From NCBI RefSeq assembly GCF_037042905.1, contig NC_087261.1:25172001-25236000 (forward strand): 64,000 nucleotides of DNA, given 5' to 3'. The position numbers and the translations under genes are program-made. This stretch comes from Lytechinus pictus. Taxonomy: Eukaryota. This document shows, one piece after another, positions 1,164 through 45,400 of this stretch (positions are counted from its first letter, which is position 1; each line of letters begins with the position of its first letter). The notes under the pieces are model-generated. The model did no database searches. It had not been told where the DNA came from and worked only from the letters and a program-made list of their open reading frames with translations.

Positions 1164-1519
1164 TTATTGAAATTTAAACTTCATACACCCTAAAAAAAGT
1201 TTTATCAAATATTGGGTAAAATGGGAGCATGCATGTTGGTTGAGTAAACAGAAAAAAATTACGCAATGTTGCGTTGAAATAGCCCAATATGGGGTAAAAA
1301 AAAATACCCAGCAAATATGCTTGTCCCCTTTCAACCCAATAATGGGTAAAATGTTACTCATTGTTTTTAGAGTGTAATGTACACGTATAATATCATATTT
1401 TGATATGAATGCAGGGGAAATAAAACTAAGTCATTATTCACGAGTGCGTCATTTCATGGCAGCTAGGACTAGATGCTTCATTGTCTAAAGGAAATGATGA
1501 TTTTAATATTGGAACTCAC

Positions 1520-1813
1520 TTCTAAAGACAGCTATGTATCCAATACCGCCACAGCTCTCAGTTGGGTCTCCTTGGCATGGAACGGAACAGTCTGAATCTA
1601 CTCCCACTCCATGTCTCGCATAGTTATCACTGGCTACCCCACAATAACATTCATTCCCATTTCCAACACCAGCGTATGTATAGTAAGATGTGATGGACAG
1701 TCGACAAAACCAGATGCAATATGAAATATTTATCGATGCACTAGAAAGTTTGAAGTTGCTAGATAACACTCTGTCAGTTTTGTTATCCTTGAAACATCCA
1801 AGATATCCCTCAC
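1520..1813 (-). CDS. Gene A WSC-domain exon (98 codons)
   Basis: GEGYLGCFKD..RVL..ISYC..FC..YAGV.NG.ECYCG..C..PCQGD..ESCGG..AVF; 8-Cys WSC pattern; ATAG|GT acceptor, A|GTGAG donor. Confidence 0.92.
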
Positions 1814-4800
1814 CTATTATAAAGATGCACGATAAAGTAATGAATTTCAGGATTGAACTTCGAAACGTTAATAATATTTAAAAAAAATATCTTACAATCA
1901 GAACGATATGAACGTCAATTATGTTCAATGTTGCCGAAATATGAAATTAGATGTGAATCCCCTCAAAGCAATGTAAATTACCTAAATTATGAATCTCATT
2001 TTTTTTAGGGGGGTCGAGCTATATTCTTAATACTAGCCAGATCTAGTGAATTAATGATTAATTTCACCAGGGGGCCGTTCTATAAAGCTGTTCGTTAAGT
2101 TAAGAGCGAGTTTAAGAACGACTGGTGAACCTTTCCTACGAGCTTAAACCATCACCAATGAATATACAATTTACCACAAGAAAGGATCACCAGTCGTTCT
2201 TAAACTCGCTCTTAACTTACTTGCTTTATGAAACACCCAACTGGCTTACCACCCAGCAGTAACCTTATATGTTTCTAAAAGCTACTCTGCCTTCATGTCC
2301 CAGGGTGCAAAAATAAAACATTAAAGGACAAGTCCATTCCAACAAAATGTTGATTTGAATAAAAAGAGAAACGTCCAACAAGCATAGCAGTGAAAATATC
2401 ATCAAAATCGGATTTAAAACAAGAAAGTCATGACAACTTCAACTTTCGCTTAATTTCACAAAACAGTTTTATGCACATCCTGGTCGGTATGCAAATGAGG
2501 AAACTGATGACGTCATCCACTCACTATTTCTTTTGCATTTCATTATATTAAATATGACATATTCTAATGTTCTCCTCATTGTCAAGTAAAACAAACATTT
2601 ATTCCTCCCTGAACATGTGGATTTGTTTAGTTAGGTTGTTCCTTATTTTCAAATCTTTAAAAAATGAAATATTGTATAATTCAAACAAAAAAAGGATTTA
2701 AAAAAATAGTGAGTGAGTGAGGGACATCATCAACTGTCTCTTTTGCATGGCACTGACTTGTACATATAACTGCTTTTGTGAAAAATAAGTGAAACTTTAA
2801 CATTCTTATTTTACACCCGATATTGACGAAATTTTCAGCGTTATGCTAGTTTGATTTTTCTCCATTTACTTAAATCAAGATTTTTCTAGAATGGACTTTA
2901 CCTTTAACGGCGGTTCATAGCTTAATGGATAGTAAAGCTATACACCATTTTTTAATAATTTGGCATGCTTAGATCAACAATTATTGTGTACGCAAAGATA
3001 TATTTTTTTTCTATTATTGCATACTTAAATTAATCCGTTAATACATGTATAGGTATTTTGTTTAAGTATTTGTATTGTATTAATTGAACATCATTGACAT
3101 TGTATAGCAAAAAATTGTTCGTATATATTTATTCTCTAGAAAAATGCGAATTATAATGATAAAAGAGAAAAAAAGTCAGACTAATTGGAGAATTTCCGGA
3201 CACGTGCATTTGCTTTCTGGGTTTATTTCGCCTTCTTCCATGAACATAAATAATATATTGCATTTACATTCATTTTGTTTTATTGATTTATAAATCTTAC
3301 ACGAATTTTGAAGAAAAGAATGTTTAATTGAACTGAATTAAGAGAATCAAGCCACTGTACGCCCACAAATGCCAAATGAAAAGTAAAGGACTGGAAATTC
3401 ACTTTCGTTCAAGTAATACCTGCGGCACATCAGTGCCGAAATTCAGTTTATAAAGCAAAAAGGGTTTCTTTTTCACATTTTTATTTTCATTCCCCTTGTC
3501 CCTTACTTTCTGTATTATTTTCCTTGAACGAGCCTGTAGGCTTTAATTTGTATATTGAAAAATATGAAACAAATTGTAAACGTTGGAAATGGAAATAAAC
3601 GAAATTAAGTGAAATGACATAACCAATTTCATTGCTATTAAACATTATTGGCCATCAAGCCTGTGGTATCAACAATCGTTGTTAGAATGACTAAGAAGAG
3701 TCAATATGGCATGTGTTAAACTTTTTGTAACGGAAGTTGTATTTGCCTATCAAATTGACCTGGGTGAATTAATACTTGATCATGTGCACCCTACTGGACT
3801 CCATATTCAATTCACAGAATTGATTCGGATTCAATGTAGTCTGCCTCTAGATATTATTATTGTCGTTTTTGTAATTACCATGACAAGATGCTGCTCCTGC
3901 TGGGGAACACCCCGATGCATGTGATAATGTAGAACATGCTGCGACGTTTCCTTCACCTAGAAATTCAACATAAACATGATAAACAACAATTTATTGATTT
4001 AAGTAAAAAAAAAAAAATTATCCTAACTATTGGAACCAGGCCAATCATACATTGACTTCAGTGGGGCTAATTATGTATTCATGAGGTCATATCTCAGGCC
4101 CCCATTGACCAATTCGCCCCAATTTTGGTAGTGGAGGTATTTCATCATGCTCTACGAAAATATGGTAGCAGATATTCTAAAATGAAAAAAAAAGTTGTTT
4201 GTAACGTCATCAATTCGGTGCTCTACAGTGCGTAGCAAAAAAAAACGGGACAGTTTTGAAAAGTCTATTAAAAAATTGTTTCAAATTATGATATCTATAT
4301 TTTTATGTTAATAGATGCTCTGAAATCTTATCTTTGAAGTGCCATTTAAAAATAAATTTTGTTCATGCTTAAGTAGACACGGAACGTTTTTGTCGGGGGT
4401 TCAAAAAGAGGCTTTTGTCAAAATGGCAGAAATTAGATGATCAGACTTCTTTCTAATCAGCAAACTTCCTTTTAACCTTTTCATTATCTTTGCAATGATT
4501 TTCACATTTGAAGCCCGACCAGATAGGCCTCGCTAGCTTCTTGAAGGGCCATCACGGCGGAACTCTGGAAGCGGAGCTCGATCGACCTTCAATGCAGCCT
4601 GGTTTTTATAGACTTTTCAAATATGTCCCGTTTTTTATACACACTGTATTACAGCTCTGATCGGCGTTGGCGATGCGCTCTTCACCATGTTAACAGCGGT
4701 TTGAAATTATCCATGAACCGCGAACTCTAAGCACCGAAAACTTGTTGGTCATATGCGATATCATCTTAACCCTAATAAGATTGGGCGCTGATTCAGCCCC

Positions 4801-9187: not shown

Positions 9188-9279
9188 AGTAAGAAGCAAT
9201 AGTAATAATAACGGAAGTAGCAGTGGGAGGAGGAAGAATAGTAGTAATGTGAGAAGTAGTAGTAGTAGTAGTAGAAATA
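9188..9279. repeat. (AGT)n microsatellite running into a gap
   Basis: Degenerate AGT repeats before the gap at 9280-9633. Confidence 0.85.
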
Positions 9280-14447: not shown

Positions 14448-15201
14448 TTACACAGAATACAGTTCGTTTTCAACCATCTCCATTTCGTCGAACTGATCAC
14501 CGGGAAACGAGTCATTAGCTTTAGCGTAGAGACCCTGATCACCATCGTATCCATCCGGCTTTCCTCGGGATTTATCGGGCATCGCGTACAAACTGCCGAC
14601 ATCTTCCGAAGTATCGTCCGAAGGGTTGTTCCGGTTCCCATTCTTATCTGGCATAGCATACAGACTGTCCATATCTTCCGAGGTGCCGTTTCGTTCGTCG
14701 TTCTTATCGGGTGCAGCGTAAACGACGCTCATTCTGTCGGCCATCTTCGCCGAGGTGTTTGGCTGCTTAGGATTTTCAAAAGAAGAGAAGGGTGCAATTC
14801 CGAGATTAATTTCGTCGTAGCCGTCATGTGCTCCGTTTGCGTTCTTGTCAGGTGGGGCGTAAAGGACGCTTAATCGGTCGTTGCTGTTCTGTTTCACCGC
14901 AGTGGCGCCACGTGAAGGATTTGGCGTCGGTTCATCGTCTGGGGTCTCATCCATTGTCCCCTCATATATATTCGATGATTTCCTGGGATTCAGATTTACA
15001 AGGAGAATGTTCTTGTTTCCTCTAGAAGAATTCGCGTTACTCTGTGCTTGTGCTCCAGGTTGGAAGCCTCTGGTAGATGCATCTGTCATTGCACCGTTGG
15101 AGATACCGAAGTCATTTATTTCATCATTCGCTGGAAGCCTGCTAACTGGAGTCAAAGTTGCTCTTTGTGAAGAGACAATACCCTTCGTCCTTTGCTGTGA
15201 C
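14448..15201 (-). CDS. Gene B cytoplasmic tail exon
   Basis: TTACAG|G acceptor; repeated YAxPDK motifs; ends [11 protein letters not shown]. Confidence 0.92.
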
Positions 15202-18200
15202 CTGTAATTGAATTTGGGATACAATTAGGTAGACATATGACAAATGTTGTACCTTCCATAGCGGGTATCCCACACTTTAATTACTATCGTCGTGAATCTT
15301 AGCGACATTTTTGATGACCGCTCAGGATCTCAACTCATAAAACGAGTATGGAGATTATCTGGCTGCAAAGTTTCCCAATGATGTACATGTACCAGTGTTC
15401 AGGAAAGACAAAAACATGACAGCGATTTCGAGAGTTATTAGCTTCAACTTAAATTGTGTTTTTATAACAACATAAACATCGTCACAATTGTAGTCAACAA
15501 TTACGGTTTAAATCATTGCACGTTTTTTTTGGAATTATCTTTCCATTTCACAGTTTCGTTACAACTATTATATCTAATACGGTTGTTACAGACCTTCTCC
15601 TTGTGAAACAAACGATGACGATGATAACTATGATGATGATCACAACAGCAGCCACACCTCCACCGATCCCTGCATATAAGCCTGTGGGATAAAATTACTA
15701 ATTATTCCTCAAGATTATTAGTTGTATTCTATTAACGAGTTCCTGAGTATAGCCTATATTCATGCATTTTAATTAAGTTTGATTGACCATCGGCATGTAA
15801 TGTTTCATTCTTCTTTCAGTACCATGGTTGTATTGGAAGTTTTCTTCGTCATGACTAGGACACGTCTCTGATTTCCCGTTACCATGGTTACCAATATGCT
15901 TGTGGCCGGACACATGGTGCATTGGAATTGATGGGGCTTTCGCGATGAGCAATAACATCATTCGACAATTAACTTACTGAGAAGTGTTTTCAAGGCTATT
16001 TAAGGCATGAAAATCGGTATATTAGAATACATGATTAATGTCATACAAGAAGCGTCGAAATCTAACGAATGCCACATCAGCTACTGCATATTATACCAGA
16101 AATATCCACACGTTGTAAACTCCTGAAGAAGACGGAGGACCATCGAAAATTAATTGGCAATCAAAGCATTATCATCAGCATTATTTTGTTACAATACTTC
16201 AGCCAATACGTGAAACTTTAAGATGTTTGGACCACACATTATGGCAAATATGCACTCATCTGCGATTTCAGTAATATTTCATAATTCGTGCAATTTTTCC
16301 GGTATCACATTTAGAGCTATCCAATTATAGCTATCAATATATTTATTTTTGCTGCTTATATCACCGTGAATATAGATAAATTGACTTTATCATCATTAAT
16401 ATTGACAGTAGAATCATTATTTGGTATTATCATCAAATTTATTTATTAGTTTTATCGTTTCTTGTATATATGTTTCGTTGCTATCTTAAACAAAGCAAAA
16501 ATTGATGAAAATAGAAATGGAATGACAGAGTAGTCGAAAGGAGTAGGGTTTACAAATTCAATATTTATTACATTTTGTGCGGAGTTCGTTGGTTACATGT
16601 GCTATTTCCCGCCAAAGGAAGATTGGACTTTCCTTGGGGACCCAGAGATGATGATGATAGTGATGATGATGATGATGATGATGGTGATGATAATGATGAT
16701 GATGATGATAGCGATGATGATGACGAGGACGACGATAATGTGGAAAGAATTTCATTACTTGATGTGGCAGTCTGGCTGGTGGAAGTTAGCAAGGATGTCG
16801 TCAGTGGTGGCGAGGAACCTGTGTTTAATCAATTAATAAATGAATTGAATTCAGTTTTGCTAACATTTTCTTAGAATCATTTATACACAACACAAATCAT
16901 TAATTTGTAAAGTGAAGACTACATATATCAGGAATATATATTTTGTAATAAGAAAGAATACTTACCCATCGGCTTAGTTGGTCTAGTCATCGGTGTTGCT
17001 GATACTGCAATATCATTTGAACATGATAAAAGGAGAAGAATATCAATAAGTATCGTGAATATCAATTTCAACTAAATCTTCACAAGGAGTGTGAAACTTG
17101 ATGAACTAATCGTTTGAGTTTTAATGGATAAGATAAAGAAGGAAAGAGTCTAAAACTATACTGACGATATCATGATATTGTTCGAAATATATTTTTTTCA
17201 AACTTGACATTGGTTTATGGTTATTGTTGCATTGTTGTTTTGTCATCAAAATTATACCTGCTTGTAAAAGGAGGCGTACTTCACTATATACTTATCAGAG
17301 AGCTAGAATCAGTATTATTTTCGTTCCAAAACAAAACAGTGATTTAACATGTTTAACAAATCGACTGGCATCACTCTAAAAACAATTAGGATATGGTCTC
17401 AATTTCCAATGTTTTATCGTAAATTTATTATATATTCATATTTTAATCATTTTTTACATTTCAGTTTGCTATAAAAGTACAAGTGCATTTGATTATTCGT
17501 ATCATTATGATAAGGGAACAACTTGCCTCTCTAAATTATCGGGTCAAAATGTTAAATATTTCCCGACGTCTAAATTACGAGTGATACTATTTGGGGATTC
17601 TTTCTCATAGCAGATAGATATACCGATATGAACGTGATATAAAGTTTATAGGCAATGTTTACTTTATAAAACAAATATTTACCATAATTAAGTTTCATTA
17701 CAAGCCCGGCTAATGTGAACTGGAAGAGATCCCAACAGTCCCCTAACAATATTTCCCACCCCTGTTTACAATAAATTAACAAAACAACTAGATTGTTGAA
17801 TGCATTTTCTTAGTTCATGGACACACAGCGGTACGAGGGCTATATCATAGAAACATTACCTCTTCTAACTTTGTGTAAGTGACGTTGTGTGTATGTGTAC
17901 ATGGGTGAGTCTCGACAACCAAATACTATTACATACAGCCCCCCCCCCCCCCCCACACACACACACACGTACACACAATCGTGAACGTTTGATAATCCGT
18001 CAGAATGAAATACACCTCCTTTTTTAATCATGTTGAGATCAGGGCCCCGTCTTACAAAGAGTTACGATTGATCCAATCAATCGTACTCTATGGAAATCCA
18101 CCAGGGTCATAATTTGTTCTACAGGAAATTTGCACAATGACTTTTGCAACCAAAGAGAAACACAGTGAATTTTCAAGAAAACGATGAATGCATGAATATA

Positions 18201-21200
18201 CATCATAGCTAGCAGCGGCGTAACAGGGGTCGGTGGCCAGGGGGGGCAAGAGCCAAAAATTTCCCGGTCATATCATGGTATGAACAGGCGTAATGGTGTA
18301 ATGAGGCGACGATTTTAAGAGGGCCGGACATTGCGTATCAGGCAGAATTTATCTTTTGAAAAAAAAAAAAGAGTTTCGAGCGAGCGGAGCGAGCGAGCAA
18401 AAATTTTGACATTTTAATACAAAAATCAAATTTTGTGATAGATTTTGACATGATATCCAAAAAATACATTTCACTCTTTTCTCTTTCCATTCCTTTTTTT
18501 GTGATCTGTACGCCACTGTGAACAGGATTATTTGCGGCAGAAGCGTGCAGAGTAAACAAAACAAAAAACGAGGGGCGCAGTATGACGCATATGCTAAAAA
18601 GCTGCTTAATATAAGTCCCGAGTAAGCGAAGCGAGCGAGAAAAAAAATCACCTTTTCATGAGAATATAACTTTGAGATATTTTTTGACATTATATTCAGT
18701 AAATAAAATCATATCCTACACTTTTCCTTTGCCTTTCTTTCCTCCTTTTTTCTTGGTAGAACTTTTGGGGACCATGGCCCAACCCTTCCATACTCATATA
18801 CGGCAGTGCTATGCGGTTGGGGTCTGGGGCGGAGCCCCCGTAACTTCTTGATATCAAAGCCATTTAAACCTCGCAGAATGCAGCTATTTAATCAAATCGC
18901 GGGTATATACAGAATATAGCTTTTACACAACACATTCATTCAACCCAGTTAAACCAAATATTTTGAGGGGGCAAAACATAGCAATGTGGGAAAGTTTAAA
19001 AAAAAAAAAAAAAAAGTCGCCAGCGAGCAAAGCGAGCTGGAAAAAAATTGCCTATTGAAATTAAATTCTAATTATGTGATAGATTTCTCCATTATATTCA
19101 GCAAATAACACATTTCATTGTTTCCATTCATTTCATTATACGTTGTCTCCTATAATTTCTTTTATTTCCTCTTGGGTGTTGAACCAAGACCCCCCCCCCC
19201 CCCCCCCCCCGCCTGTACGCCAGTGATTGAACGTAAAGCTTAATGTAGGAAGGGTCCCTACAGGGGGCGTGATAGAGCCATTTGAAGGTCATAGATGAAG
19301 AGCCCCTACTGATTGGGGTCTGGGGCTAAGCCCCGGTAGCTTATTTGCATAAAATTTAGCAAGCTAATAGCACAATGTTGTATGCACTCCATCTTTATTC
19401 CTGCTCTTTATTATCTATCCTCGTCAGCCCGGTCGTGTTATTAAGTTTTTATTTCTTGTGCCTTTTCTTTGTTTTCCAATTTAGCTTTTGACTTATTCCA
19501 TTCTACCTTCATTTCCCGCTATTGTTTGTCATTTTGTGATCTTTCCCATCATGCTATTGCACTATTTCGGAATGATTTGTTCTTTCTCACATGTTCTTCT
19601 TTTGTTCTTCTTCCCGCTTTCCTTCCTTTTCCATTTCAAAAAAATATATATTTTTTGTTTTCTTTCCACTTTTCCCTTTCTCTTTCCTTTTCCTCCTTTC
19701 CTTTCCCTCTTTTCTTCCCCTTTCTTTCTCCCTCCCTTTTATTTTTTTCCCTTTTTTTTTTCCCGGTGAAATCCGCCAGGGGGGCAACTTGCCCCCCTGC
19801 CCCCCCCCCCCCGCCCCCCGCCTGTTACGCCACTGATAGCTAGAAAATATTTTCAACAAACATGGCAATAGATGTTGACGTTGCTGGCCGTCCATTGTTG
19901 TGATTGATCGGATCAATCGCAACTCTTTGTAAGACGGGGCCCAGGGCGTCTGTAGAAGGGGGCGTTGGGCGACTGCCCTCCCCCTACGTTTAAAAAAAAA
20001 AAAAATTAGCGAGTAAGGAGAAAGACTTTCACAAATATAAGTTTCCGTCATCTAATTATTTTGTATCCTTATCATTCAATTATAATTATGAATATTAGAA
20101 CTACCGAAGTTCATGATAGCTCATTTCGGGTAAATCAAGAAAGCTAGAATAATTTTTGTTTGTGTCCAATTAAGATTTTGGTCAAGTTATCGTTCAAGTT
20201 GTGTATTTTCGGATCGCATTCCTGGATACAAATAGCACACAAGATGGGTTAACGTATAAGCAACAATATAACAATATAACCCACTTTTAACTCACTTTGG
20301 TCAAGAGATGGAGGTTGTCCTTATATACATGTACTCAATTTATGTTTGAAATGACTTTACCTGGAGTTTGACTTTCCCACTACCCCTACAAAATACCTAG
20401 GCGCCGACCCTCGTCTAGGCTACTTTCAATTGGTGGTATTTTGATAGCATTCTATAGATTTGTGTTTCAAAATTCTAGTTTAGACTAGGTTTAAACCAAG
20501 GTTTAATTATCAGAAAACCACCGATAGCGTTCAAGAATGATACTCACTGCTAAATACAGCTATGTGTCCTGCCCCACCACAGCTGTCCGTGGGGTCTCCT
20601 GAACATGCAACATGACATTGATCGTCCGATCGTTTTCCATGTCTAGTATAGTTATCACTCGCTTCACCACAGTAACATTCTTTTCCATTTTCAACGCCAG
20701 CGTATGTATAGTTCGCATCAGATGATTGGTTACAGAAATTTATGCAAGACGAAATGGTCATGTTTGGAACTTGAGTCATATAATCACCGGTGAATACTCT
20801 ATCATTACCTGTCCCGCCCTCGAAGCAACCAAGATGATGTTCTCCTGTTTGAAATATAAACATAATAATTAGTTTATTAGAATAAATCGGGCAAGTCCAC
20901 CCGATCAAAAAGATGACTTGTGCCGATAGAGAAATTAAAAGAAGCATAAGACTGAAATGTCCTTATCTGCATCTAGATTAGATGTAGCTAATGTATCAAA
21001 TTTTTCATTCATTATTTATATCATTTTATTTGTAGTTTATTTATACAGGGTAGCATTGTCAGTTTAGGAACTGCTTTCATCATGGCCCTTTCCGCATGAC
21101 ATACAATTTGTTGTGATTAATATAATTTCATCAGTAATATTTATTTATTTATTTGCCGTTTTATTTCAACAGGGTAGCCCTTTCAGTTTATTAAAACTGC

Positions 21201-24200
21201 TCGAGCAAGGGGCCCTGGTCGATAATTAATTAACTTCCTTTATTTTTAATATTATTTCCTGATTTAAAAGTATTTAACGACCGACTGTTTCTTTGATTCA
21301 CATTGAGGTTGTTCCACCCAGTATATCCCATGAATTTACATAATCAACACCACGATTACATAATATATACATGTGTAAATGAATGTGAAACCCAAAAGAA
21401 TATTTAAAAAACATATCTCTTAAAATCTAAACATTGAATCAAGTTGTTTGAAAATAAACGAAACTCCAAAAACAAACCAAAAGCCCCAAAGGCCGATTTT
21501 GAATTTTGAAAAAAATATATGAAGTTCTGCCTAATCCAAAATCGAAAATAAAATTAATATCAAACTACAGATATCATACAGCTTTGTTAAACCAGGTATT
21601 AAAATGAATAGTTTCCTTGTTATATTTTAATTGTTTCATATGATATATGGAAACTCATAATTTCCTTTAATTATTTTTTTATTGATTCCTGATTTAAAAG
21701 CATTTAACGACTGGCTGTTTCTTTGATTCACATTGAGGTTGTTCCGCCCAGCATATCCCATGAATTCAAATGTCCGACTGGCTGCACAATTATTCAACTT
21801 TATGGTATTACTACTTTCATGCGGAATCTTGTTTCAATTTCATGATTTGGCCTGGCGAAGATACATTTCATATAATCGGGCAAAAGATCATTCAGACATA
21901 TATACCTTGATAATGCTATGTCGATTCCATCGGATTGGCAGTTCTTGCCGCTTTAGATCTCTAAACATATCAATTATGTGAGTTTGTGGATGTGCACCCA
22001 GAATCATTCTAGCCATTTTATTGTGTACTTTACTAATCTATCGAGATTTTTCGACGATGCATTTGACCATGCAACATCGCAATAATCTTGAAATGGTATG
22101 ATTAGGGAACAACATAACATCTTCAAAATTTCATTTGGTAAAACCGGTTTTGCAGATCGTCTTAAAAACCCTATTCTTTGAGATACTTTACTCGCTATAA
22201 GACCAATGTACTCCTTCCATACTAATTGTTAATCAAGAATGACACCAAGATATTTAAATCTCGTCAATCTCTCGATATATACTGATAGAAGGGCATTAAT
22301 TTCAGATGAGAAAATTATTTAAGGTTTTGTCGAGTTCCAAGCAACATAAATTATGTTTTCTTTAGGTTCAGTGTCAGCTTATTTTGGTAAACCATTTTTC
22401 TGCTACCTGCAGACCAACTTGCATATCATTTTGTGATTCATGAACGTTTTTTGCTTTAAAGGTAACGGGGCAAATGATGACATTTTTGTTACTTGTGCTC
22501 TCTCTTCTTAATACGATCTGAACCTCTGTATCTCACGATCTTTGACACCACCATGATATGATATTTCTAATAGTAGGCCTATATGATGGACAACGGTGTC
22601 AAATGCCTTCTTCAGATCAACAACAAAATATAAAATTGCTCCATTGATGAAACTGTCGTTCATGCCTTTAAGAATGTGATTAGTTTATCAGTGCAGTTTG
22701 GGTTGAGTGGTGAGGTCTAAAACAGATTGCTCTCGTTAAAGTATTTGTACAGTTTATTATGAACTGCTCTTTCTGATATTTTGGATACAACAGGAAGGAT
22801 GGATATAGTTTCCGATGTCTTCTTGATCACATCTCTTAAAAATTGGAGAAACTTTTGCTACTTTCCATTTATAAGGAAACATATATGTAGCTAACGAAAT
22901 ATTTGTAAGATATGTCAGTAATTTCAAAACAACAAGACATGCAGATTTTAGAAGCCTGGGAGATATTCCATCGATTCGTGTGGCTTTATCAGATTCCATA
23001 GCTTTTATTTCCTTTTGCATAAAACGCCATGGTCACTGGTTCAAAAATCAAATCATCCCCTGGATTTTCAGGATCGTCATCAAATATCGAATGATCAATT
23101 TCGTCATCCTTAAATCCGGCCGCAAGTTTCTTTCCAACATGAACAAAGTATTCACTAAACTCATCTGCCAAAAACGTATTATATTGAATCGGTAGAGTTC
23201 TGACTTCCGACATATAGTTGGCGCTTAGAATATCCAAGTTTTAGGTCACTATCATTTTTTCTTCAGCTCGCGCTTCGCGCTCGCATCAATTGTAAAACTA
23301 AAGACCCATCCTATTCATAGTTACAAAATGTGCTTAGAATGTCAGATTTTTGGTCGGAAATTCAAAAAAAATAAGCTCGTGCTTTGAGCTTGAACAGAAA
23401 GTTGAGATATATACCCATCTGTTCCAAAATTGTGGTCAGAATATAAAAAAAAAATCAGCTCGCGTTTCGCTTGCATCAATTGTTTAGGTTTAGATATACG
23501 TATACCCTTCATGTTCACGTTTATAAACAGTGCTACGAATATCCAATCAGGAAACATATACATGTAGATGAAAATATCCCCCTCCCCCTATTAGCGAAAG
23601 CTGGATCCGCCCCTGGTACAGAAATGTCAGCTCCCGCTCACATAATTTTAGTAGGGTCTACTCTGATGTGAAGTTGAACTAAATTGAAACCCGAAAGTAC
23701 TTAAAATTATATGTTTTCATTGGGTGGTTCGATAAAACTAATCGTAAGTTACGAGCGACTTTAAGAACGACTGGTGATCCTTTGTTGTGGTAAATGATAT
23801 TGACCATTACATGTTCATTAGTGATTATGTATAGCGTAAGAAATGTTCACCAGTCTTTCTTAAAGTTGCTCGTAACATACAAACAACTTAATGAAACACC
23901 CACCTGGTCGCATTTATTATTTTCAGAAAATGGTATTATAACATTATTCATGAATATATTTTTTTCATGAACATATTTTTTTTAATGGTCTTCGATTGCA
24001 TTTTTTCACGTGATTATGAAAAAAACATCAACATGCATTTAAGGCATCTTTGTTTGCGAGGGGAGCGCTATTTTCCAGAAAGTTCACAGGGACGCAAAAT
24101 TAGGTCGGGCCCCCCGGGCGCAAAATACTGCATACCTGCCTGATATGATATTCAAACATATTCAACCACTGGATATCACTGATGATTTGCTTTTTTTGTA

Positions 24201-27200
24201 ATTACCATGACAAGATGCTGCTCCTGCTGGGGAGCACCCCGATGCATGTGGTAATGTAGGACATGCTGACAGGCTACCTTCACCTAGAAATTCAACATGA
24301 ACATGATAAACAACAGTCTGTTTATTTACGTCTGCAAATCTTAAAATATGTTTTAAATTTAATGCAGGCACAATGAAGGATTTAGGGGGTGATTGAAAAG
24401 ACAGAGCCCCGTATTCTGATAGCAGGTGTAATTTAACCCTAGTCTAAAGTTAACCCTGGTTTAAATAAACATCCTCTAAACCTCACCTCTGGTCTAAGTG
24501 TAGTTTAATTTTGGTATTATGATAGCCAGGTTTAACTAAACCTGGGTTAAACCCGGGTTTAAATTTATTTTTGGAAATAATCAGCCTCTTTCGACCAAGA
24601 CTAGCAACCTTTGGGTAAATTACTGCTGCAGGGGTGACTGCAACAAAGTTGAAAAATGTCACTAAAGTTGTTTTTTTCTCAAAAATTTGGATTTTATGAA
24701 AACTGATTACAACTATTGTAGTGAAAGAAAAACATTCATCACCCATATATGATAAGGATTTTTTCATTAAGATTATCTTTATATTTCTTACTTACTAAAA
24801 CATTTCAATCTCAAACCGAGTGACTTGCACAGTTTTTTTGTGTATCAGTCCCATTTATTGCTTTTCATGTATTGTTTGTCAAAATCTAAATTGAATAGAT
24901 TCCTCTCGACATCTTTATTTTAACTTTAGTTGAAGTAGACCTAAGGGAAAACTTTTGTAACTTTTGAGACTAGTCTTGGGTCTAACATTAGGCCTAGATC
25001 TAGCCTAGGCCCAAGATCAATATCCGTCTGTTTGGAGGAGAATTGAACATTGGCATTGGCTATCGGAATACGGGCCAGAAAGTCATCCCTGCATTCGTAT
25101 CGTTGAGAGTAGATAAGTGATGGATAAGTAAATAATATTAAACCACATATAGAATGTTTAAACATCTGACAAGTAGAACTCAAAGCTTTGGACTGTACAA
25201 CAAAGACATTGATGGTATAGGCGAACTATACCCCCTCCATCTTATATCCACATTTACTTTTTTTCCGATGGGAGGCTGCTGGAACACTGACGTATAACAA
25301 TTAATTCTACTTCATAGGTAAAAATCGACGATGTAAAATTAGGTCGCGATTCTAGACAGTTTAAATTGGCAGATAAATTGTTACATCTGCCTCCAAACTG
25401 ACCGCTGGTTTTTTATTTCTAAATTTGGTTTGTTTGGATTCGTTTTGGCCAGTTTGAATGTGGCATCAGTAAACCTTTTATTTTTCTAGAGACAGTATTA
25501 CAGTATTGGTGGTTTGGGATGAAACGGGCATGGAGGCACAATCACTACATGTATATGCAGCTCCCTGGTCAAGGCAGGGAGCGACACAACGGCAATGTGT
25601 TTTATATGGAGTTATTACAGCTCTTATCCGTGTTGGCGATGCGCTCTTCACCGTGTTCATAGCAGTTTGAAATTGTCCATAAACCGCCAACTCTATGCAC
25701 CGACAACCTTTTCGGCCATATGTGATATTTACTAAAGAGTTGTGAAACTAAACACACATCTGACAGGGGAACCCCGGTGGAGTGGTCCACCTGCACACTA
25801 CAAGTCAGTTCTGGAGGAGAGACCTGCGGGTCATAGTGAGTCAGTTCGCTTTACGTTTCCCATGTATCGGTGACGCCAAAACAGTAAACTACATTTTTTT
25901 TTTTTAATAAAGAATATAAATTTACTAGTTTAGGAAGGTACGTAAGAGTATTTTGTGAAATATATATTAAATGTATGTGTTTACTTCCGTTACAATCCAA
26001 CCCAATGACAGGATTTGAATTCTGTCCATAAGGTGTGGTCTTCACTGCTAGGCTTGCTCCTGTGAATCCTAACTGTCTGCAGATGACGATGACATCATTA
26101 ATGTCAAGATTCATTCCACATGTCGTCTCCCAATCGCCGCCATCTTGCTTGACCTCTACTGTACCTTTATTAGATGCTGGACCTCCAATTAATTGTACAT
26201 CTATCAAGAAAGGGCAACGTGTGTAAATGAATATGAATCTAGGAGAGAATAAAATCTGCGATTAGGTTTAGCTTTGAAAAATGCAAAAGAGAAGAACTTC
26301 TTCCAAGTTACAACTGTCACTCGATTCTCTACAGACAATATACTTGTATCAGATTTTCAGAAACACAGAAAATATCTGATCACTATCGCGATTTTTTCCT
26401 TCATATGGATTCCGATATATCGAAGTTATTTAGGTTACAATTTGTCTTTCTTTTCATTGTTGTAGACTTTTTCTTTAATCACTTAAAAGTACTTTTTAAG
26501 ACCCCTCAAAACAATAGGGCAGACGGGCTAAAATCAATTAAGCACATTACGGCGTTTTTCATCTTTGAACAACATGATGTCATGCAATTAACGTAGCCTT
26601 AGATCATATAAAGGACATGTCCACCCCACAAAAAGTTTATGTGAATAAAAAGAGAAAAATCCAACAGTCATGACACTGAAAATTTGATCAAAATCGGATG
26701 TAAAATAAGGAATTTTGAAAGTTTTGCTTAGTTTCAGAAAAACAGTTATATGCATATCCTGATCGGTATGCAAATAAGGGGAGTGATGACATCAATCACT
26801 CACTATTTATTTTGTATTCTATAACATGAAATATGATATATTCTATTTTTTTCCTCATTCTCCTGTGAAACAAAGTTTTCATCCTCCCTGAACATATGGA
26901 AAAAACATTGTTATATCATTCAATGTTTCAATCAAGTTGGTCCTTAAGGTCAAATCTGTAAAAATTGAAATATTGCATGATTCAAACAATAAAAAGCAAA
27001 AAAAAATTTAGTGAGAGGGGAACATCATCGATTCTCTCATTTGCATATCACTGAATTGTACATATAACTTTTTTGTGAAAAAAAGGCAAACCTTTAAAAT
27101 GTCATAACTTTCTTATTTTACACAAGATTTTGATGAAACTTTCAGCTTTATCCTCGTTTGATTTTTCTCTCTTGATTCAAGTCAACATTTTTAAGGGGTG

Positions 27201-27341
27201 GACTTGACCTCTAATAACGATAAAACCCATGATATTTGGCAGTCTGGTTTGTTTACCTGTTATGACGCAGCTGACCATGTGATTACTGTACTGCATGAGA
27301 AGAGTCATTAGGAACACGAGGATGATCCGATGCCAATTCAT
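14448..27341 (-). CDS. Gene B: complete SRCR-WSC-mucin stalk-TM receptor with Tyr-rich tail, 592 aa
   Basis: Exons 27341-27257, 26200-25985, 24283-24206, 20844-20548, 17004-16966, 16818-16597, 15681-15594, 15201-14448; total 1779 nt = 593 codons including stop. Confidence 0.88.
15594..15681 (-). CDS. Gene B transmembrane exon
   Basis: [28 protein letters not shown]; phase 1 in, phase 2 out. Confidence 0.9.
16597..16818 (-). CDS. Gene B Ser/Thr-rich stalk exon (74 codons)
   Basis: GSSPPLTTSLLTSTSQTATSS..(S)n..GPQGKSNLPLAGNST; poly-Ser encoded by (TCA)n. Confidence 0.85.
16966..17004 (-). CDS. Gene B 39-nt linker micro-exon
   Basis: ISATPMTRPTKPM; TGCAG acceptor, G|GTAAGT donor; homologues in C and D. 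Confidence 0.8.
18043..19941. mobile_element. PIF/Harbinger-like MITE with CAG target duplication (related copy at ~12104-12267)
   Basis: CAG|GGCCCCGTCTTACAAAGAGTT...AACTCTTTGTAAGACGGGGCC|CAG. Confidence 0.8.
18213..19835. mobile_element. hAT-like non-autonomous element nested in the MITE
   Basis: TIRs CAGCGGCGTAACAGG/CCTGTTACGCCACTG; perfect 8-bp TSD ATAGCTAG. Confidence 0.85.
20548..20844 (-). CDS. Gene B WSC-domain exon (99 codons)
   Basis: GEHHLGCF..MTISSCINFC..YAGVENGKECYCG..CHVACSGDPTDSCGG. Confidence 0.92.
21040..23237 (-). mobile_element. Degenerate CR1/L2-group LINE reverse-transcriptase remnant
   Basis: IDGISPRLLK, WKVAKVSPIFK, DLKKAFDTV and FKYLGVILD motifs, broken by stops and frameshifts. 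Confidence 0.85.
24206..24283 (-). CDS. Gene B SRCR C-terminal exon
   Basis: SEGSLSACPTLPHASGCSPAGAASCH. Confidence 0.88.
24405..25077. mobile_element. Harbinger-like MITE
   Basis: Inverted ends GCCCCGTATTCTGATAGC / GCTATCGGAATACGGGCC; internal palindromes. Confidence 0.5.
25985..26200 (-). CDS. Gene B SRCR N-terminal exon
   Basis: [41 protein letters not shown]; 216 nt. Confidence 0.92.
27257..27341 (-). CDS. Gene B signal-peptide exon
   Basis: [28 protein letters not shown]. Confidence 0.82.
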
Positions 27342-38742: not shown

Positions 38743-39490
38743 TTACATAGTATACAGTTCATTTTCAACCATCTCCATTTCATCATACTGATCACCAGAA
38801 AACGAGTCATTAGCTTTAGCGAAGAGATCCTGATCTCCATCCGGCTTTCCTCGGGATTTATCGGGCATCGCGTACAAACTGCCGACATCTTCCGAAGTAT
38901 CGTCCGAACGGTAATTCCGGTTTCCATTCTCATCTGGCATGGCAGACAGACTGTCCATATCTTCCGAGGTGACGTTTCGTTCGCTGTTCTTACCGGGCGC
39001 GGTGTAAACGGCGCTCATTCTGTTGGTCACCTTCGCCGAGGCGATTGGCTGCTTAGTATTTTCAAAAGAAGAATAGGGCGCAATTCCGAGATTAATTCTC
39101 TCGTAGCCGTTCTGTGCTCCGTTTCCGTTCTTCTCAGGCATGGTGTAAAGGACGCTTAATCGGCCGTTGCTCTTCTGCGGGATGTCAGTGGTCCCACGTG
39201 ATGTATATGGCGTCATTTCATCGTCTTGGGTTTCATCCATTGTCCCCTCATATATATTCGACGATTTCCTGGGATTAAGATTTACAAGGAGAACATTCTT
39301 GCCTCCTCTAGAAGAATTCGCGCTACTGTGTGCTTGTGCCCCAGGTTGATAGCCTCTGGCGGACGACGCATCTGCCACTGCACCGTTGGGGATACCGAAA
39401 TCATTTATCTCATCATACACTGGAGGCCTGCAGACTGGAGTCAACGTGGCACTTTGTGAAGAAGCGATACCCTTTATCCTATCTTGTGAC
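38743..39490 (-). CDS. Gene C cytoplasmic tail exon
   Basis: Homologous to the B tail; ends [11 protein letters not shown]. Confidence 0.92.
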
Positions 39491-42400
39491 CTGTAATTAT
39501 TTTTTTTATATAATTAGGAAGAAATATGAACAATTTTATACATTTCATAGCGGGTATCCGCTTGAAGTATTTTTGTCGTGAATCTTAGCGCCACATTTAT
39601 GGCCGCTCAGGATCTCAACTTTTAAAGCGAGGATGGAGATTATCTGATTGCTTAGTTTCCCATTGATGTTGAAGTGTTTAGGAAAGACAAGAACATGACA
39701 GAGCAACTTCGAAAGTCATTATCTTTAAATTTAACTGTATTTTTATAACAACATAAACACCGTCACAATTGTAGTCAGCAATCACGTTTTATATCATTGT
39801 ATTTTCGTGGAATTATCTTTCTATTTCACAGTTTCATTACTACCATTATATCTATAAAAATATACGGTTGCTACAAACCTCCTTGTGAAACAAACGATGG
39901 CGACGATGACTATGATGATGATCACAACAGCAGCCACTCCTCCACCAATCCCTGCATACAAGGCTGTGTGAATCAACATTACTAATTATTCCGCTCGATT
40001 ATACGTTTAAAATTATCGTATAAACTATTCTTAATGCAAAAGTGTCAAGAACCTCTTCAAATGATAAAAAGTTGCATGAATATATGGTAACGGGTTTCTT
40101 AATTCCTACTGTTTTCATGCGTTTTGATTGAGGTTGATGGACCTGCGACAATTTTAACTCTTATTCCCATGCAGTGGTCATGGTGGTTGCCTTGGGGGTT
40201 TTCATCATGGGAGAAGTCACTGATTTTCTGTTACCAAATTGCCTGTGTTACCGCCCGCGCGTGTTTCATTCGAATTGGCATTTAGTGGGTCTTGATGATG
40301 AAATATAACTCAGATAACTTATTACGCAATATACATGTATACCTTTATCCTGGTACTACATTAATATAAAAAATTATTGCATTTCCTCACTATTATTACT
40401 GTGACTGTTATCATTTGGTTTAAATATGATTCGTGTTGCTATCTTAAAAGAAAGGAAATATGGAAATATAAGTAGAAAAAGAAAAAAATATTGAAAGAGT
40501 AATTGTAAGCGTAAGGTTAGCTGAAAATATATACAACAGTTGTCAGGGGTTCGGTAAATTACCTGTGCTATTTCCTGCCGTAGGAAGATTGGAAGTTCTT
40601 TGAGGTTCCGTAGGTGATGATGCTGNNNNNNNNNNNNNNNNNNNNNNNNNNNNNNNNNNNNNNNNNNNNNNNNNNNNNNNNNNNNNNNNNNNNNNNNNNN
40701 NNNNNNNNNNNNNNNNNNNNNNNNNNNNNNNNNNNNNNNNNNNNNNNNNNNNNNNNNNNNNNNNNNNNNNNNNNNNNNNNNNNNNNNNNNNNNNNNNNNN
40801 NNNNNTTGTTGTAACTTCCTGGTTAGTGGATGGTATAGTGGATGTCGTCGTAAGTGGTGAAGTGGCTGTGTCAAAATGAAAGAACATTTAGATTAATTGA
40901 CTTTATTACTAAATGTCACATTTATTACTAAATGTCATACATTTTCTATCAATTTTACATAATGCATTGTAATATGGCAATTTGAGCTAACACAGCCGCG
41001 ACTCATAAATATTTTGTTTTAAGATGTCCTTGAATATTTTTCAATTATTCATTAGTTATTTCTTGCATTCCAAAGAGAATATGTTGTATTGGGCCAGCCG
41101 AGAAGATTCGCCGGCAATCCGCTCGAAGATGTCGTTGACGAAGCTGTTCATGATCGTCATGGCCCGGCTATGAATTCCATAAATAAAAAAATATCAAAAA
41201 GTCGCCATTTATGCAATGATACATTTCAGCCCTCACCCTTCAACCATATTCTTCTTAAAAAATAAAATAAATGGAAACTTAACTACATTTCCCAGATTGG
41301 GTTGATATAATATCAAACCCAGACTGTAGATGTATCTGTATTATTTAACATTATAAATGCAATGATCTTTTTGATTTATTAACTATAATGTTTGGTATTT
41401 TCATCAGCTACAGAACAGGTAGTGAAGTTCAAATCTAAGACTCTTGAATTAACTCAGTGAACATAGCTAATTCTTGTACCTTTTCCCCGCTAGAAGCCTC
41501 TATTGTCTAGCAGTCTCTATTGTCTACTTTCCATTGTAAATTACAAAAATGCCAGACATTGCAGTGCCTCATTTAATATGCGTGCCTAACAAACCCTAAC
41601 TGAGACATTCTGGAATATTCTTATTATGCAATAAACTTCCCCAAGAGAAAAATAGTTAAATGAGTGAATATACATGTAGTTTCTCTTACTATTTTTCTTA
41701 TACATAACACAGGTACGTATCATAATTACAAAAATGTGCTTATAATATCCCCTTTTAGGTTTGAATATCAAAGATTTTCAGCTCGCGCTACGCGCTCTCA
41801 TTATTTGATCAATGAGATATACATCCGTTTAATGGCACCGTCCGTAAAATGTCTCTATTAGATCAGTATACCTGGCAATTGAGCGCACTTCGCGCGCCAA
41901 AGAAGTGATTCAATTTTCTGCTGGTGCCGCCCCCCCCCCCCACCGCATACAGTGACCCCGGTACGCCAGTGTTAATAAATGAGTACTACTCGTATTAACT
42001 TGATTAGTAGCTGTTAACTTTTTAATAATATTCGATTTCAAAATCTATTTTGCTAAAATCAAGATTCGTCATATTTAGTACATATACAGTATTGTCATAA
42101 TAAGAGAGGAAACATACCCAGTACCGTAGTCGGTGTGTTCATTGTCATGGCGGCTGATACTGCAATTGCATTTTTTTTTTTTATTAAAAGGAAAGAGAAA
42201 ATTAAGATTTTTATCAATTTCACCAAATGACAATCAAATTTACAATACATGTCTAAATATCACAAATATTTTTATGATAATACATTTTTAAAAAATGAAG
42301 TAGAGAAGTACAAGAAACGGTAAACCCAGCGTACTGTTTCATCTGTTGAAACGATTTTGTTACTGCCGTATGTGTTTAGATTTCTTCTCATAAACATGTA

Positions 42401-45400
42401 TTGCATTGTGTTTGTATTTATTGATTATTCCGTTCAAATAAACAAACAACATATCATTACAAAGTCAAATATATCAAAAAGTATGTCAATCATAATTATT
42501 CATAACATAGAAGAAAAATGAATTCGAACTGTATAAAACTGACGTTGCCAAAATAGATAACAACAGAATAGAACGACAATATCATGTTTTAATTTGTTAA
42601 TAGACCAGGGTAAACGTTACAAACATGGTGAGTATGAAGTTTATAGTCGATTTTTGCAACATTAGTTTTGATATTACATAAATAAATGTACATGTTGTAC
42701 TTACTAATGGATTTGTCTATACAAATACGGTGACACGTTTCTGTTCGTATCTTCTTAGACCCCCCTACCCTCCAATTTAAAAATGTACAAATTAGAATTG
42801 TATTAAAACGAACAAAATGAGATGTATCTCCTCAAATGAACATGATGAAATATTAAAAGGTAATGATACACCATTGCCTGGAAAATCAAATTCATTTGAT
42901 TTAGAATTCATACTTCTAAAGACAGCTATGTATCCAATACCACCGCAGCTCTCAGTTAGGTCTCCATGACATGGAACGGAACAGCTTGAATCTTCTCCCA
43001 CTCCATGTCTCGCATAGTTATCACTGGCTTCTCCACAAGAACAACTCGATCCATTTTCTACTCCAGCGTACGAATAGTAAGGTGTGGTAGACACTCCACA
43101 AAACCAGAAGCAATATGAAATACTCATCGACATACTATTAATGACGGAGGTGCTAGATAACACTCTGTCATCCGAAACATCTTTAAAACATCCAAGATAT
43201 TCCTCACCTATATGGATAAAGTAATGAATTTTCGCATTGAACTTCGAAACGTTAGGAATATAAAAAAATTGTCTTACAATCATAACGATATGAAAGTCAA
43301 TTATGTTCAATGTTGCCGAAATATGAAATTACATATGCATTACCTCAAAACATTGTAAATTACCTAATTATTATGAATCTCATATTTTTCTTTTTTGAGC
43401 TATATTCTTAATACTAGTCAGTTCTAGTGAATTAATTATTTATTACACCTGGCTTACCACCCAGCAGTAACCTAATATGTTCCTAATAGCTACTCTGCCT
43501 ACATTTCCCAGGGTGCAAAAATAAAACATTAAAGGACAAGTCCATCCCAACAAAGTGTTGATTTAAATAAAAAGAGACAAATCCAACAAGCATAACAGTG
43601 AAAATATCATCAAAATCGGATGCAAAACAAGAAAGTTATGACATCTTAAACTTTCGCTTAATTTCACAAAACAGTTTTATGCACATCCTGGTCGGTATGC
43701 AAATTAGGAAACGGATGACGTCATCCACTCACTATTTCTTTTGCAATTCAAACAAAAAGTAAAAAAATTGTGAGTGAGGGACATCATCAACTGTCTCATT
43801 TGCATGTCACTGACTTGTACATATAATTGCTTTTGTGAAAAATAAGCGAAACTTTAAAATTCTTATTTTACACCCGATATTGATGAAATTTTCAGCGTTA
43901 TGCTAGTTTGATTTTTCTCCATTTATTCAAATCAAAATTTTTCTAGATTGGACTTTACCTTTAACAGCGCTTCATAGCTTATTGGATAGTACAGTTATAC
44001 TCCATTTTTTATTCCATTTTTTTAATAAATTGGCATGCTTTAATAGATCAACAATTAGTGTGTACGCAAAGATATATATTTTGTATTATTGCATACTTGA
44101 ATAAATCCGTTAAAACATGTATAGGTATTTTGTTTAAGTATTTTTATTGTATTAATTGAACATCATTGACATTGTATAGCAAAAAATTGTTCGTATATAT
44201 TTATTCTCTAGAAAAATGCGAATTATAACAAGACAGAGAAAAAAAGTTCAGACCAATTGGAGAAATTCCCGACACGGGCACTTGCTTTCTGGGTTTATTT
44301 TGCGTTCTTCCATCAACATAAATGATATATTACATTCATTGTTTTTATTGATTTATAAATCTTATGTGAAATTTTAAGAAAAAAATTTCTAATTGAACTG
44401 AATTAAGAGAATCAAGCCACAGTACGCCCACAAATGCCAAATGAAGAGTAAAGGACAGGAAATTCACTTTCGTTAAAGTAATACCGACGGGACATCAGTG
44501 CCGAAATTCAGTTTTTAAAGCAAGAAGGGTATGGTTTAACATTTTTTTATTTTCATACCCCTTTGTCCCTTACTTTTTGTTTTATTCTCCTTGAACGAGT
44601 CTGTAGGCTTTAATTTGTATATTAAAATATATGAAACAATTTGTAGATGTTGGAAATGGAAATAAACTAAATTAAATGAAATGAAAAATGAAATGGCATA
44701 ACCAATTTCATTGCTACAGAACATTATTGGCCATTAAGCCTGTGGTATCAACAATCGTTGTTAAAAATGACTATTCAATATCGCATGTGTTAAAATCTTT
44801 CACTTCTTGTGACGGAAGTTGTATTTGCCTATCAAATTGATGAGGTTGAGTTATAACTTAATCATGAGTCCCCTAGTAGACTGTCCATATCCAATTCACA
44901 TAATTGATTCGGATTCAGTATAGTAATGTTGTTTCTTTAATCACCATGGCAAGATGCTGATCCTGCTGAAGAACACTCGGATGTAGGTGGTAATATAGGA
45001 CATTCTGATAGGCTTCCTTCACCTAGAAATACAACGTAAATATGATAAAGAACAATCTGTTGATTTACGTCAACATACTTTTTTCTTAAAAATATATTCA
45101 ATATTTATAAATGTGACATAATAAAAGATATGATGAGTCCTTGAAAAGGCTTTACTTTCTTTGGGAGTAGATGTATAATGGAAAAAAGTGGAAAATATTA
45201 AGCCACATATTCATTTTTTTTTTATTTAACAAGCTAGGTTCAAAGCGCTGGACTGTATATAAACAAAAATAATGATGGATATCGGCGAACACTACACGTA
45301 ATAGAGAGTTTTCGCAATCACGACGCGGCCGCTCTCTACAACGCACCAATTCCTTTGAAAATGCAAGTCAATTCACAATGGATGGCTAAGAGGCTTTTAT

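Follow-up and report, generated by a model that had tools for sequence, protein, structure and literature searches.

Does a pair of tyrosines in the cytoplasmic tail of a sea urchin receptor form an ITAM, the tyrosine-based activation motif of immunoreceptors? This question is raised by a stretch of 64,000 nucleotides of Lytechinus pictus DNA (the window), in which self-comparison revealed four tandem minus-strand paralogues (A, B, C and D) of a receptor gene with SRCR and WSC domains, the last exon of A lying off the left end. To our knowledge, almost nothing is known about how any of the hundreds of SRCR genes of sea urchins signals. An earlier note had proposed that a 16-residue stretch in the tails of copies B, C and D was an ITAM- or hemITAM-like docking site for a Syk- or Shark-type kinase, convergent on Dectin-1. 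We conclude that this stretch most likely consists of neighbouring Y[DE]xI and Y[SVA]S[FV] short linear motifs in a disordered cytoplasmic tail. Judged from sequence, it is moderately probable that these are two independent YxxΦ sites, for docking of SH2 domains or for sorting by adaptor protein (AP) complexes, within a multi-tyrosine scaffold tail.

Position and spacing of the tyrosine pair

The motif of copy B, DGYDEINLGIAPFSSF, was found at 14778-14825 of the window on the minus strand, inside a 258-codon open frame. It had been placed at 14779-14826; the motif is present as described, and its position is off by one base. The peptides given for copies B, C and D were exact when checked by a six-frame pattern scan and the reverse complement (copy D reads DGYDEINIAIAPYSSF), and the second tyrosine is indeed lost in copy B, through a single TAC to TTC change. 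Two more copies of the motif are present just left of the window, one in copy A (locus L004) and one at locus L005. The layout of the gene places the motif on the cytoplasmic side: a hydrophobic transmembrane exon followed by RRR/KRR lies upstream of it, preceded by a signal peptide and the SRCR/WSC ectodomain. The predicted topology is that of a type I membrane receptor.

The gap between the two half-sites is exactly six residues in all Lytechinus copies and in Strongylocentrotus purpuratus, which puts the tyrosines ten residues apart. In 20,000 shuffles of one tail, the pattern Y..[LI]x6-8Y..[LIF] arose in ~1% and the relaxed pattern Y..[LIVF]x6-8Y..[LIVF] in 2-3%, both values being uncorrected for other classes of tyrosine motif. 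The tails of paralogues are not independent samples for such statistics, and the sole independent support for the motif is the occurrence of both tyrosines at equal spacing in S. purpuratus.

Comparison with the ITAM and hemITAM definitions

A regular-expression search for the canonical ITAM, Yxx[LI]-x6-8-Yxx[LI], found none in 16 tails of the family, and none was found in these tails with the broad x6-12 spacing used for Draper (PMC6219719). A relaxed form, YxxI-x6-Yxx[F/V], was present in 11 of the 13 tails of the subfamily that carries the motif. The first half-site agrees with the ITAM definition, reading YDEI, YERI, YGEI, YEGI or YEVI in 12/13 subfamily tails; the spacing of six residues falls within the required six to eight, and a membrane receptor carries the motif on its cytoplasmic side. 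The second half-site departs from YxxL/I, reading YSSF in Lytechinus, and YVSV or YASV in S. purpuratus, while both copy B and the L. pictus protein P0001 have FSSF. The caveat that the second half-site ends in F, already entered in the earlier note, thus holds for Lytechinus, with V taking its place in S. purpuratus. What stands of the ITAM-like claim is the pair, its spacing, its cytoplasmic site and part of its conservation; the second half-site and the absence of any canonical ITAM from the 16 tails tell against it.

HemITAMs sit in the short N-terminal tail of type II lectin-like receptors. They are defined by a tri-acidic DEDG before YxxL (PMC11624271). On the hemITAM reading, the single DGYDEI site would be paired by receptor dimerisation and would recruit Syk, in the sense of Dectin-1 and CLEC-2. 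DGYxxI does resemble the closing residues of DEDGYxxL, 12/13 subfamily tails (copy B with its lost second tyrosine among them) keep the first site, and a Syk-type kinase gene is present in the genome. However, the tri-acidic element is absent, the contexts being AQDGY, AHDGY, SQGGY, AQNGY and, in S. purpuratus, PRNDY, and the +3 residue is I rather than L. The site is also found mid-tail, ~130 residues after the transmembrane helix of a type I receptor with a long tail, and the tail holds another DGYD with no hydrophobic residue at +3. A match over four residues is not very informative, and we consider a hemITAM highly improbable; the likeness that had been seen in DGYDEI does not hold up, with only one acidic residue before the tyrosine. 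No C-type lectin domain was found in a Pfam scan of the copies. The comparison with Dectin-1 is an analogy only, in which both glucan binding by the WSC domain and docking of Syk are putative. By its sequence, the motif lacks defining features of both the ITAM and the hemITAM, and it does not appear to be what the family conserves.

Conservation of the tail tyrosines

Loss of the motif in orthologues had been named as evidence that would speak against the proposal; it was not seen in S. purpuratus, where both tyrosines are kept. The orthologues of this species, with tails ~45-47% identical, read NDYEGITNEMAPYVSV and NDYEVITNEMAHYASV (for example, YEGI-TNEMAP-YVSV). The six-residue gap is retained, and of the motif's residues only the two tyrosines, the two +3 hydrophobics and the AP before the second tyrosine survive. 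Identity of 6/16 residues in the motif against 47% for the tail, with the tyrosines and +3 positions kept, is the signature of two separate short motifs.

We then asked how the motif tyrosines compare with the others of the tail. In the 13-tail subfamily alignment the first motif tyrosine is present in 12/13 tails and the second in 11/13. The tyrosine of NIYEG is present in 13/13, those of the second and fourth YAxPDK repeats in 12/12, and the C-terminal ELY in 12/13, the exception being the truncated model P0002. Each paralogue has lost a different subset of tail tyrosines. P0001 lacks both motif tyrosines (GGNDEINLGIAPFSSF) and copy B lacks one; one double and one single loss are too few events to judge whether the two tyrosines are coupled. 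In a sister subfamily, formed by S. purpuratus LOC100888657 (P0009) and locus L006, and in Diadema, the ~35-residue segment holding the motif is a gap or a different repeat. The residues invariant across the family are two YAxPDK, the NIYEG tyrosine, (G)LYA and MVxNELY; the motif tyrosines are not among them. Between Lytechinus and S. purpuratus, tyrosines were retained in 18/24 alignment cells and other residues in 233/480 (Fisher p = 0.012), which indicates that the tyrosines are what the tail conserves.

A true non-canonical ITAM would have both tyrosines phosphorylated together, and a Syk-type or Shark-type kinase would dock there through its tandem SH2 domains, as Shark does on Draper in Drosophila. 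The relaxed pattern in 11/13 tails, its single-tail chance frequency of 1-3%, the joint loss of both tyrosines in P0001, and the retention in S. purpuratus of tyrosines, +3 hydrophobics and spacing while the intervening residues change are all consistent with such a unit; so are the Syk-type (contig C11) and Shark-type (contig C16) genes of the genome, and the precedent of Draper, which combines its ITAM with 10 other tyrosines (PMC6219719). Nevertheless, neither L nor I ever closes the second half-site, the sister subfamily and Diadema lack the segment, and copy B and P0001 show the motif in decay. Most other tail tyrosines are at least as well conserved as these two, which are picks out of 9-15, and the first of them belongs to a DGYD repeat module that lacks a hydrophobic +3 residue in its other copy. 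We therefore regard a working ITAM as improbable.

The tail dN/dS of 0.31-0.77 among the five genomic paralogues is consistent with loose constraint, as expected for a disordered tail bearing motifs. The upper end of this range, the very low RNA coverage of copy B, the internal repeat origin of the motif and its losses in copy B and P0001 could also indicate that the pair has no specific function, and arose as a neutral by-product when parts of a fast-evolving, low-complexity tail were duplicated. This seems quite improbable, however, since the tyrosines and +3 hydrophobics are selectively kept across genera while their neighbours change, and tyrosines as a class are preferentially conserved.

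Other conserved or replaced elements of the tail were also apparent. The block LLVNLNP(R/K/T)KS(S/M)NIY(E/G)G is the best conserved between Lytechinus and S. purpuratus (14964-15014 in copy B, minus strand, and also present in C and D), and a [DE]xxxLL dileucine-type motif precedes it in S. purpuratus and some Lytechinus copies. From Diadema to Lytechinus the tail ends in an invariant (M)V(E/D)NE(L/I)Yx(M/V), which closes copy B (Table 1, minus strand) as well as C and D; we take this C-terminus to resemble class II PDZ ligands such as the ends of ephrin-B and syndecan. In the diverged subfamily, L006 (region 25280255-25280425 of contig C17, genome G000) and P0009 carry two YSS(V/M) sites 16 residues apart, in a TxYxxV context like that of an immunoreceptor tyrosine-based switch motif (ITSM). 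This pair replaces the YDEI…YSSF segment, and is another that is open to over-reading as an ITAM.

A probably disordered tail with tyrosine repeats

All 16 tails carry 9-15 tyrosines and have a disorder-type composition, falling below the charge-hydropathy boundary with ~70% disorder-promoting residues; a weak model predicted no secondary structure after the transmembrane helix. AlphaFold2, run on the full receptor with an 8-sequence alignment, gave a mean predicted local distance difference test score (pLDDT) of 33 and a predicted template modelling score (pTM) of 0.19. Because the SRCR and WSC domains were modelled poorly too, low confidence in the tail is by itself no evidence of disorder, and we therefore used the test on composition.

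The layout is common to every member of the family: 1-4 YxxΦ sites (3-4 except in copy B), which include YDEI, YSSF, YSSV and YxxI, then 3-5 YxxP sites, then ELYxM within the C-terminus (M)V(E/D)NE(L/I)Yx(M/V). Tandem YxxP sites, in the form of 3-5 YA(x)PDK per tail, run from Diadema to Lytechinus within this disorder-type composition. No NPxY was found in the urchin tail. The acidic Y-D-E-I resembles SH2 ligands of Src-family kinases (pYEEI) and Nck (pYDEV). The consensus for the Crk SH2 domain is pYxxP, and three or more such sites in one protein are reportedly rare (PMC2689226).

Internal alignment of the tail bears directly on the origin of the pair. LYAxPDK-x6-DGYD, which spans repeat 1 and the first motif tyrosine, aligns with LYAMPDK-x5-DGYD, which spans repeat 4 and the following DGYDGD (shuffle p <= 0.0002), and the DGYD of repeat 4 has no hydrophobic +3 residue. 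A second YDEIN lies near the membrane with no partner tyrosine (p about 0.02-0.04). Because the first motif tyrosine sits in a duplicated module whose other copy lacks the hydrophobic +3 residue, the ITAM-like spacing would be a by-product of internal duplication and of a subfamily-specific insert, rather than a dedicated docking unit for tandem SH2 domains.

F and V at +3 are canonical for YxxΦ sorting signals, such as the YTRF type read by the mu2 subunit of AP-2. They are not canonical for an ITAM, and an additional role in AP sorting is therefore plausible. YDEI and YSSF/YVSV both fit the YxxΦ sequence, in which Φ is a bulky hydrophobic residue (L, I, M, F or V), in a tail of disorder-type composition and are predicted mu-subunit ligands. 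Could sorting then be their only role, with unphosphorylated YDEI (in a GYxxI context) and YSSF/YVSV binding adaptor mu subunits and directing endocytosis or lysosomal delivery? GYxx[I] is found in all Lytechinus copies, the [DE]xxxLL signal lies upstream in S. purpuratus and some Lytechinus copies, and SRCR receptors are typically endocytic (PMC10855680). But with ~130-140 residues between them and the membrane, the sites are distant from where a lysosomal GYxxΦ usually lies, the G before the tyrosine is not kept in S. purpuratus (NDY), and the surrounding tail is dominated by YxxP repeats, which are not sorting signals. A purely sorting function is rather unlikely; sorting is compatible with SH2 docking, and hence not exclusive of it.

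Candidate kinases and a model of the tail

To identify tandem-SH2 kinases, we crossed the genome matches to SH2 (PF00017) with those to the tyrosine kinase domain (PF07714), which gave three candidates. At C11:2.018-2.047 Mb lies a Syk-type gene in which kinase exons accompany two SH2 domains, one of them N-terminal; its best natural matches in the PDB were ZAP-70 and SYK. A Shark-type gene (C16:2.409-2.450 Mb) shows the order SH2, ankyrin repeats, SH2 and kinase, which is the Shark/HTK16 architecture. Syk and HTK16 have also been reported in a sea-star egg transcriptome (PMC11593052). Because intact genes of both types are present, ITAM signalling is not forbidden in this animal; the presence of the kinases says nothing about the present motif.

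The third candidate (C17:2.144 Mb) was rejected, as it is a Src-type gene with two alternative first-half SH2 exons. These lie ~250 bp apart (WFFGSIKR… and WYFGKIKR…; L007:4195-4671, C17:2144195-2144671, plus strand), which suggests that they are mutually exclusive.

On the gene structure, motif inventory, conservation pattern and internal repeats observed here, we infer phosphorylation of the tail and its readers as follows. Ligand-driven clustering of the receptor would lead a Src-family kinase to phosphorylate the tail tyrosines, after which the acidic YDEI sites would be suitable for SH2 domains of the Src-family or Nck type. The (L/V)YAxPDK repeats, three to five in number, would provide pYxxP sites for SH2 domains of the Crk, Abl or RasGAP type, through which the receptor may be coupled to actin remodelling and uptake. 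When unphosphorylated, the YxxΦ sites may serve in addition as sorting signals for AP complexes.

Several points weigh against this model of independent sites. The assignment of SH2 readers draws, by analogy, on consensus motifs of vertebrates. The exact ten-residue spacing of the tyrosines, kept over the Lytechinus-Strongylocentrotus split, would also be predicted by an ITAM-like unit, for which the genome supplies tandem-SH2 kinases. Draper provides an example of an invertebrate phagocytic receptor that combines one ITAM with many other functional tyrosines (PMC6219719). Finally, RNA support for copy B amounts to a handful of reads.

Gene structure, locus and transcription

When the blocks shared by the paralogues were translated, every gene proved to have an exon each for SRCR, WSC and the transmembrane segment, and a last one of ~250 codons. 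The gene model taken from the protein P0010 consists of a signal peptide, SRCR, WSC, a short stalk, a transmembrane segment and the tail (Table 1). In copies B, C and D, PF00530 (SRCR) scored 38.9-42.3 bits (gathering cut-off 26.1) and PF01822 (WSC) 56-66 bits (gathering cut-off 27.8), and the Pfam scan of these copies found no family in the tails.

Table 1. Positions of receptor features in the window
Feature	Position	Strand	Remark
Copy A WSC exon	1512..1814	-	tail exon of copy A left of window, locus L004
Copy B last exon, 251-aa cytoplasmic tail	14451..15203	-	stop codon 14448-14450; no Pfam family, disorder-type composition
Copy B C-terminus VENELYSV	14451..14471	-	family-wide invariant (M)V(E/D)NE(L/I)Yx(M/V)
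Copy B YAMPDK, repeat 4 of (L/V)YAxPDK	14571..14588	-	invariant family-wide; followed by SRGKPDGYDGD
Copy B YAMPDK, repeat 3	14643..14660	-	
Copy B YAAPDK, repeat 2	14703..14720	-	Tyr kept in 12/12 subfamily tails
Copy B motif DGYDEINLGIAPFSSF	14778..14825	-	first site YDEI intact, second site Tyr to Phe
Copy B YAPPDK, repeat 1	14844..14861	-	with next DGYD, homologous to repeat 4 and its DGYD
Copy B membrane-proximal (Y)DEINDFGI unit	15102..15128	-	Tyr to Asn in B; Tyr in other Lytechinus copies
Copy B transmembrane exon	15593..15682 (approximate bounds)	-	
Copy B short stalk exon	16949..17011	-	
Copy B WSC domain exon	20549..20845	-	PF01822, E 2e-17
Copy B SRCR exon, second part	24198..24281	-	
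Copy B SRCR exon, first part	25980..26207	-	PF00530, E 1e-10
Copy B signal-peptide exon	27198..27341 (approximate)	-	
Copy C tail exon	38746..39492	-	
Copy C motif	39064..39111	-	six-frame pattern scan
Copy C WSC exon	42918..43208	-	
Copy D tail exon	56360..57115	-	
Copy D motif DGYDEINIAIAPYSSF	56687..56734	-	six-frame pattern scan
Copy D WSC exon	60368..60676	-	

Transcription was assessed in three RNA-seq runs of the species, each sampled at ~6%; run X1 is evidently DNA, as it covers introns evenly. Few reads supported copy B, all of them oriented as minus-strand RNA in a standard stranded library, and two spliced reads joined ~17004 to ~20551, which is the stalk/WSC exon junction. Copy B is transcribed and spliced, but barely so in the sampled runs, from which level and tissue cannot be inferred.

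Within copy B, an open frame for a serine-rich, mucin-like stalk, SSSLGPQGKSNLPLAGNST, was seen at 16568-16792 (minus strand). It matches stalk sequence in P0002, P0011 and P0013, is skipped in the model P0010, and may be an alternative exon. An intron of the same copy contains an inverted high-copy repeat (17900-18100 and 19900-20100) with very high depth in both RNA and DNA runs and many opposite-strand joints, and this repeat probably represents a transposable element that has terminal inverted repeats. Between genes A and B, 10795-11924 holds a tandem array of a ~160-bp unit whose copies are 83-90% identical. The A region (1-13800) and the C-D region (42900-57600) show long collinear similarity of 82-93%, introns included; because this similarity runs beyond the exons and through the introns, it points to a recent segmental duplication.

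Distribution of the receptor family

A profile built from three tails gave only six matches in the whole 812-Mb genome, all within 180 kb of contig C17. These were the three tails in the window, copy A (L004), the further copy L005 and the diverged copy L006. A HMMER search of 1.84 billion representative proteins gave six 50%-identity clusters, all echinoid and named 'uncharacterized' or 'WSC domain-containing', from L. pictus, S. purpuratus, Diadema setosum and one ENA fragment. Two word-indexed searches added L. variegatus, and no species beyond these four was found by the exhaustive profile search and the two word-indexed searches. A PDB sequence search with the whole tail gave no match at E <= 10. 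By these searches the family appears to be confined to echinoids, annotated but uncharacterised, with the present genes as tandem L. pictus paralogues.

Copy B corresponds to P0010 (L. pictus LOC129280033, 518 aa), to which it is 99.6% identical over the tail and 98% over the WSC exon, and the tail of P0014 reads identically to that of L005. The L. pictus RefSeq proteins P0001, P0002 and P0013 had no match above 87% among the six tail exons (G000 C17:25.10-25.28 Mb), and assemblies or haplotypes seem to differ in which genes of the cluster they contain. In the model of P0001 (LOC129280029) the stalk runs directly into the tail with no transmembrane exon, which represents either a secreted or odd isoform or an error of the gene model.

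Significance

This small, echinoid-only family offers a receptor tail that can be read, with its fixed YAxPDK repeats, acidic YxxI sites and invariant C-terminus. Should Y[DE]xI-x6-YxS[F/V], against our expectation, work as a non-canonical ITAM, linking a pattern-recognition receptor with SRCR and WSC domains that is specific to echinoids with a Syk-type or Shark-type kinase, no ITAM-type immunoreceptor would have been described in an echinoderm before it, and lectin-to-Syk wiring would have been invented independently. ITAM-to-Syk immunoreceptor wiring would then extend into echinoderms on a non-lectin scaffold, and the YAxPDK repeats would represent a second, Crk-type output. In the likelier case that there is no ITAM, the family would still serve as a compact illustration of how internal duplication builds a receptor tail with many phosphotyrosines, and as a caution against picking two tyrosines from a dozen.

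Comparison with known systems

Draper/CED-1/MEGF10 is similar in being an invertebrate type I receptor of the phagocytic or scavenger type, with a long tail of about a dozen tyrosines, and a Shark-type gene is present in the urchin genome. Draper recruits the Shark kinase through one ITAM (YxxI/L-x6-12-YxxI/L), and its tyrosines outside the ITAM matter too (PMC6219719). Its ectodomain is made of EMI/EGF repeats, whereas that of the urchin receptor is SRCR+WSC, and there is no sequence homology between the two; the urchin tail also lacks NPxY, and its pair is non-canonical, with F or V at the second +3 position.

With Dectin-1, CLEC-2 and DNGR-1 the urchin receptor shares a proposed carbohydrate-type ectodomain and a G-Y-x-x-hydrophobic sequence after an acidic residue. 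The vertebrate receptors are, however, type II C-type lectin-like proteins with a short N-terminal tail and DEDG before YxxL (PMC11624271), while the urchin protein is type I, with a mid-tail site that follows one acidic residue and has I at +3, and with some ten tyrosines besides.

The substrate domain of p130Cas, and paxillin, Dok and Gab, likewise hold repeated YxxP (the Crk SH2 consensus) in a disordered region (PMC2689226), together with an acidic Y-D/E-x-hydrophobic site, separate from the repeats, to which a Src-family kinase could bind. These scaffolds are cytosolic, in contrast to the urchin receptor tail, which has only 3-5 repeats of fixed YA(M/K/A/P)PDK form and no homology to them.

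The tails of the non-ITAM transmembrane adaptors PAG/Cbp, LIME1 and SCIMP and of poxvirus A36 dock Csk, Src-family kinases, Grb2 or Nck. Like the urchin receptor, in which phosphorylation is predicted, these proteins have a single transmembrane helix followed by a disordered multi-phosphotyrosine tail, and they were the nearest named clusters by language-model features in the ESM Atlas (PAG/LIME1, SCIMP and A36R, scores 0.76-0.78); the Atlas matches, at 0.76-0.85, were all below the reliability level of the tool and are a weak lead only. Unlike the urchin receptor they have almost no ectodomain, and the kinship has no support from alignment.

A further comparison is with the SRCR expansion of S. 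purpuratus, in which SRCR with WSC is a common domain combination (36 WSC-containing SRCR genes) and tandem duplication is typical (PMC10855680); the words 'ITAM' and 'tyrosine' occur nowhere in the text of that survey. The present receptors share both the domain combination and the tandem duplication, and their tail defines a family of only about six clusters at 50% identity, all of them echinoid.

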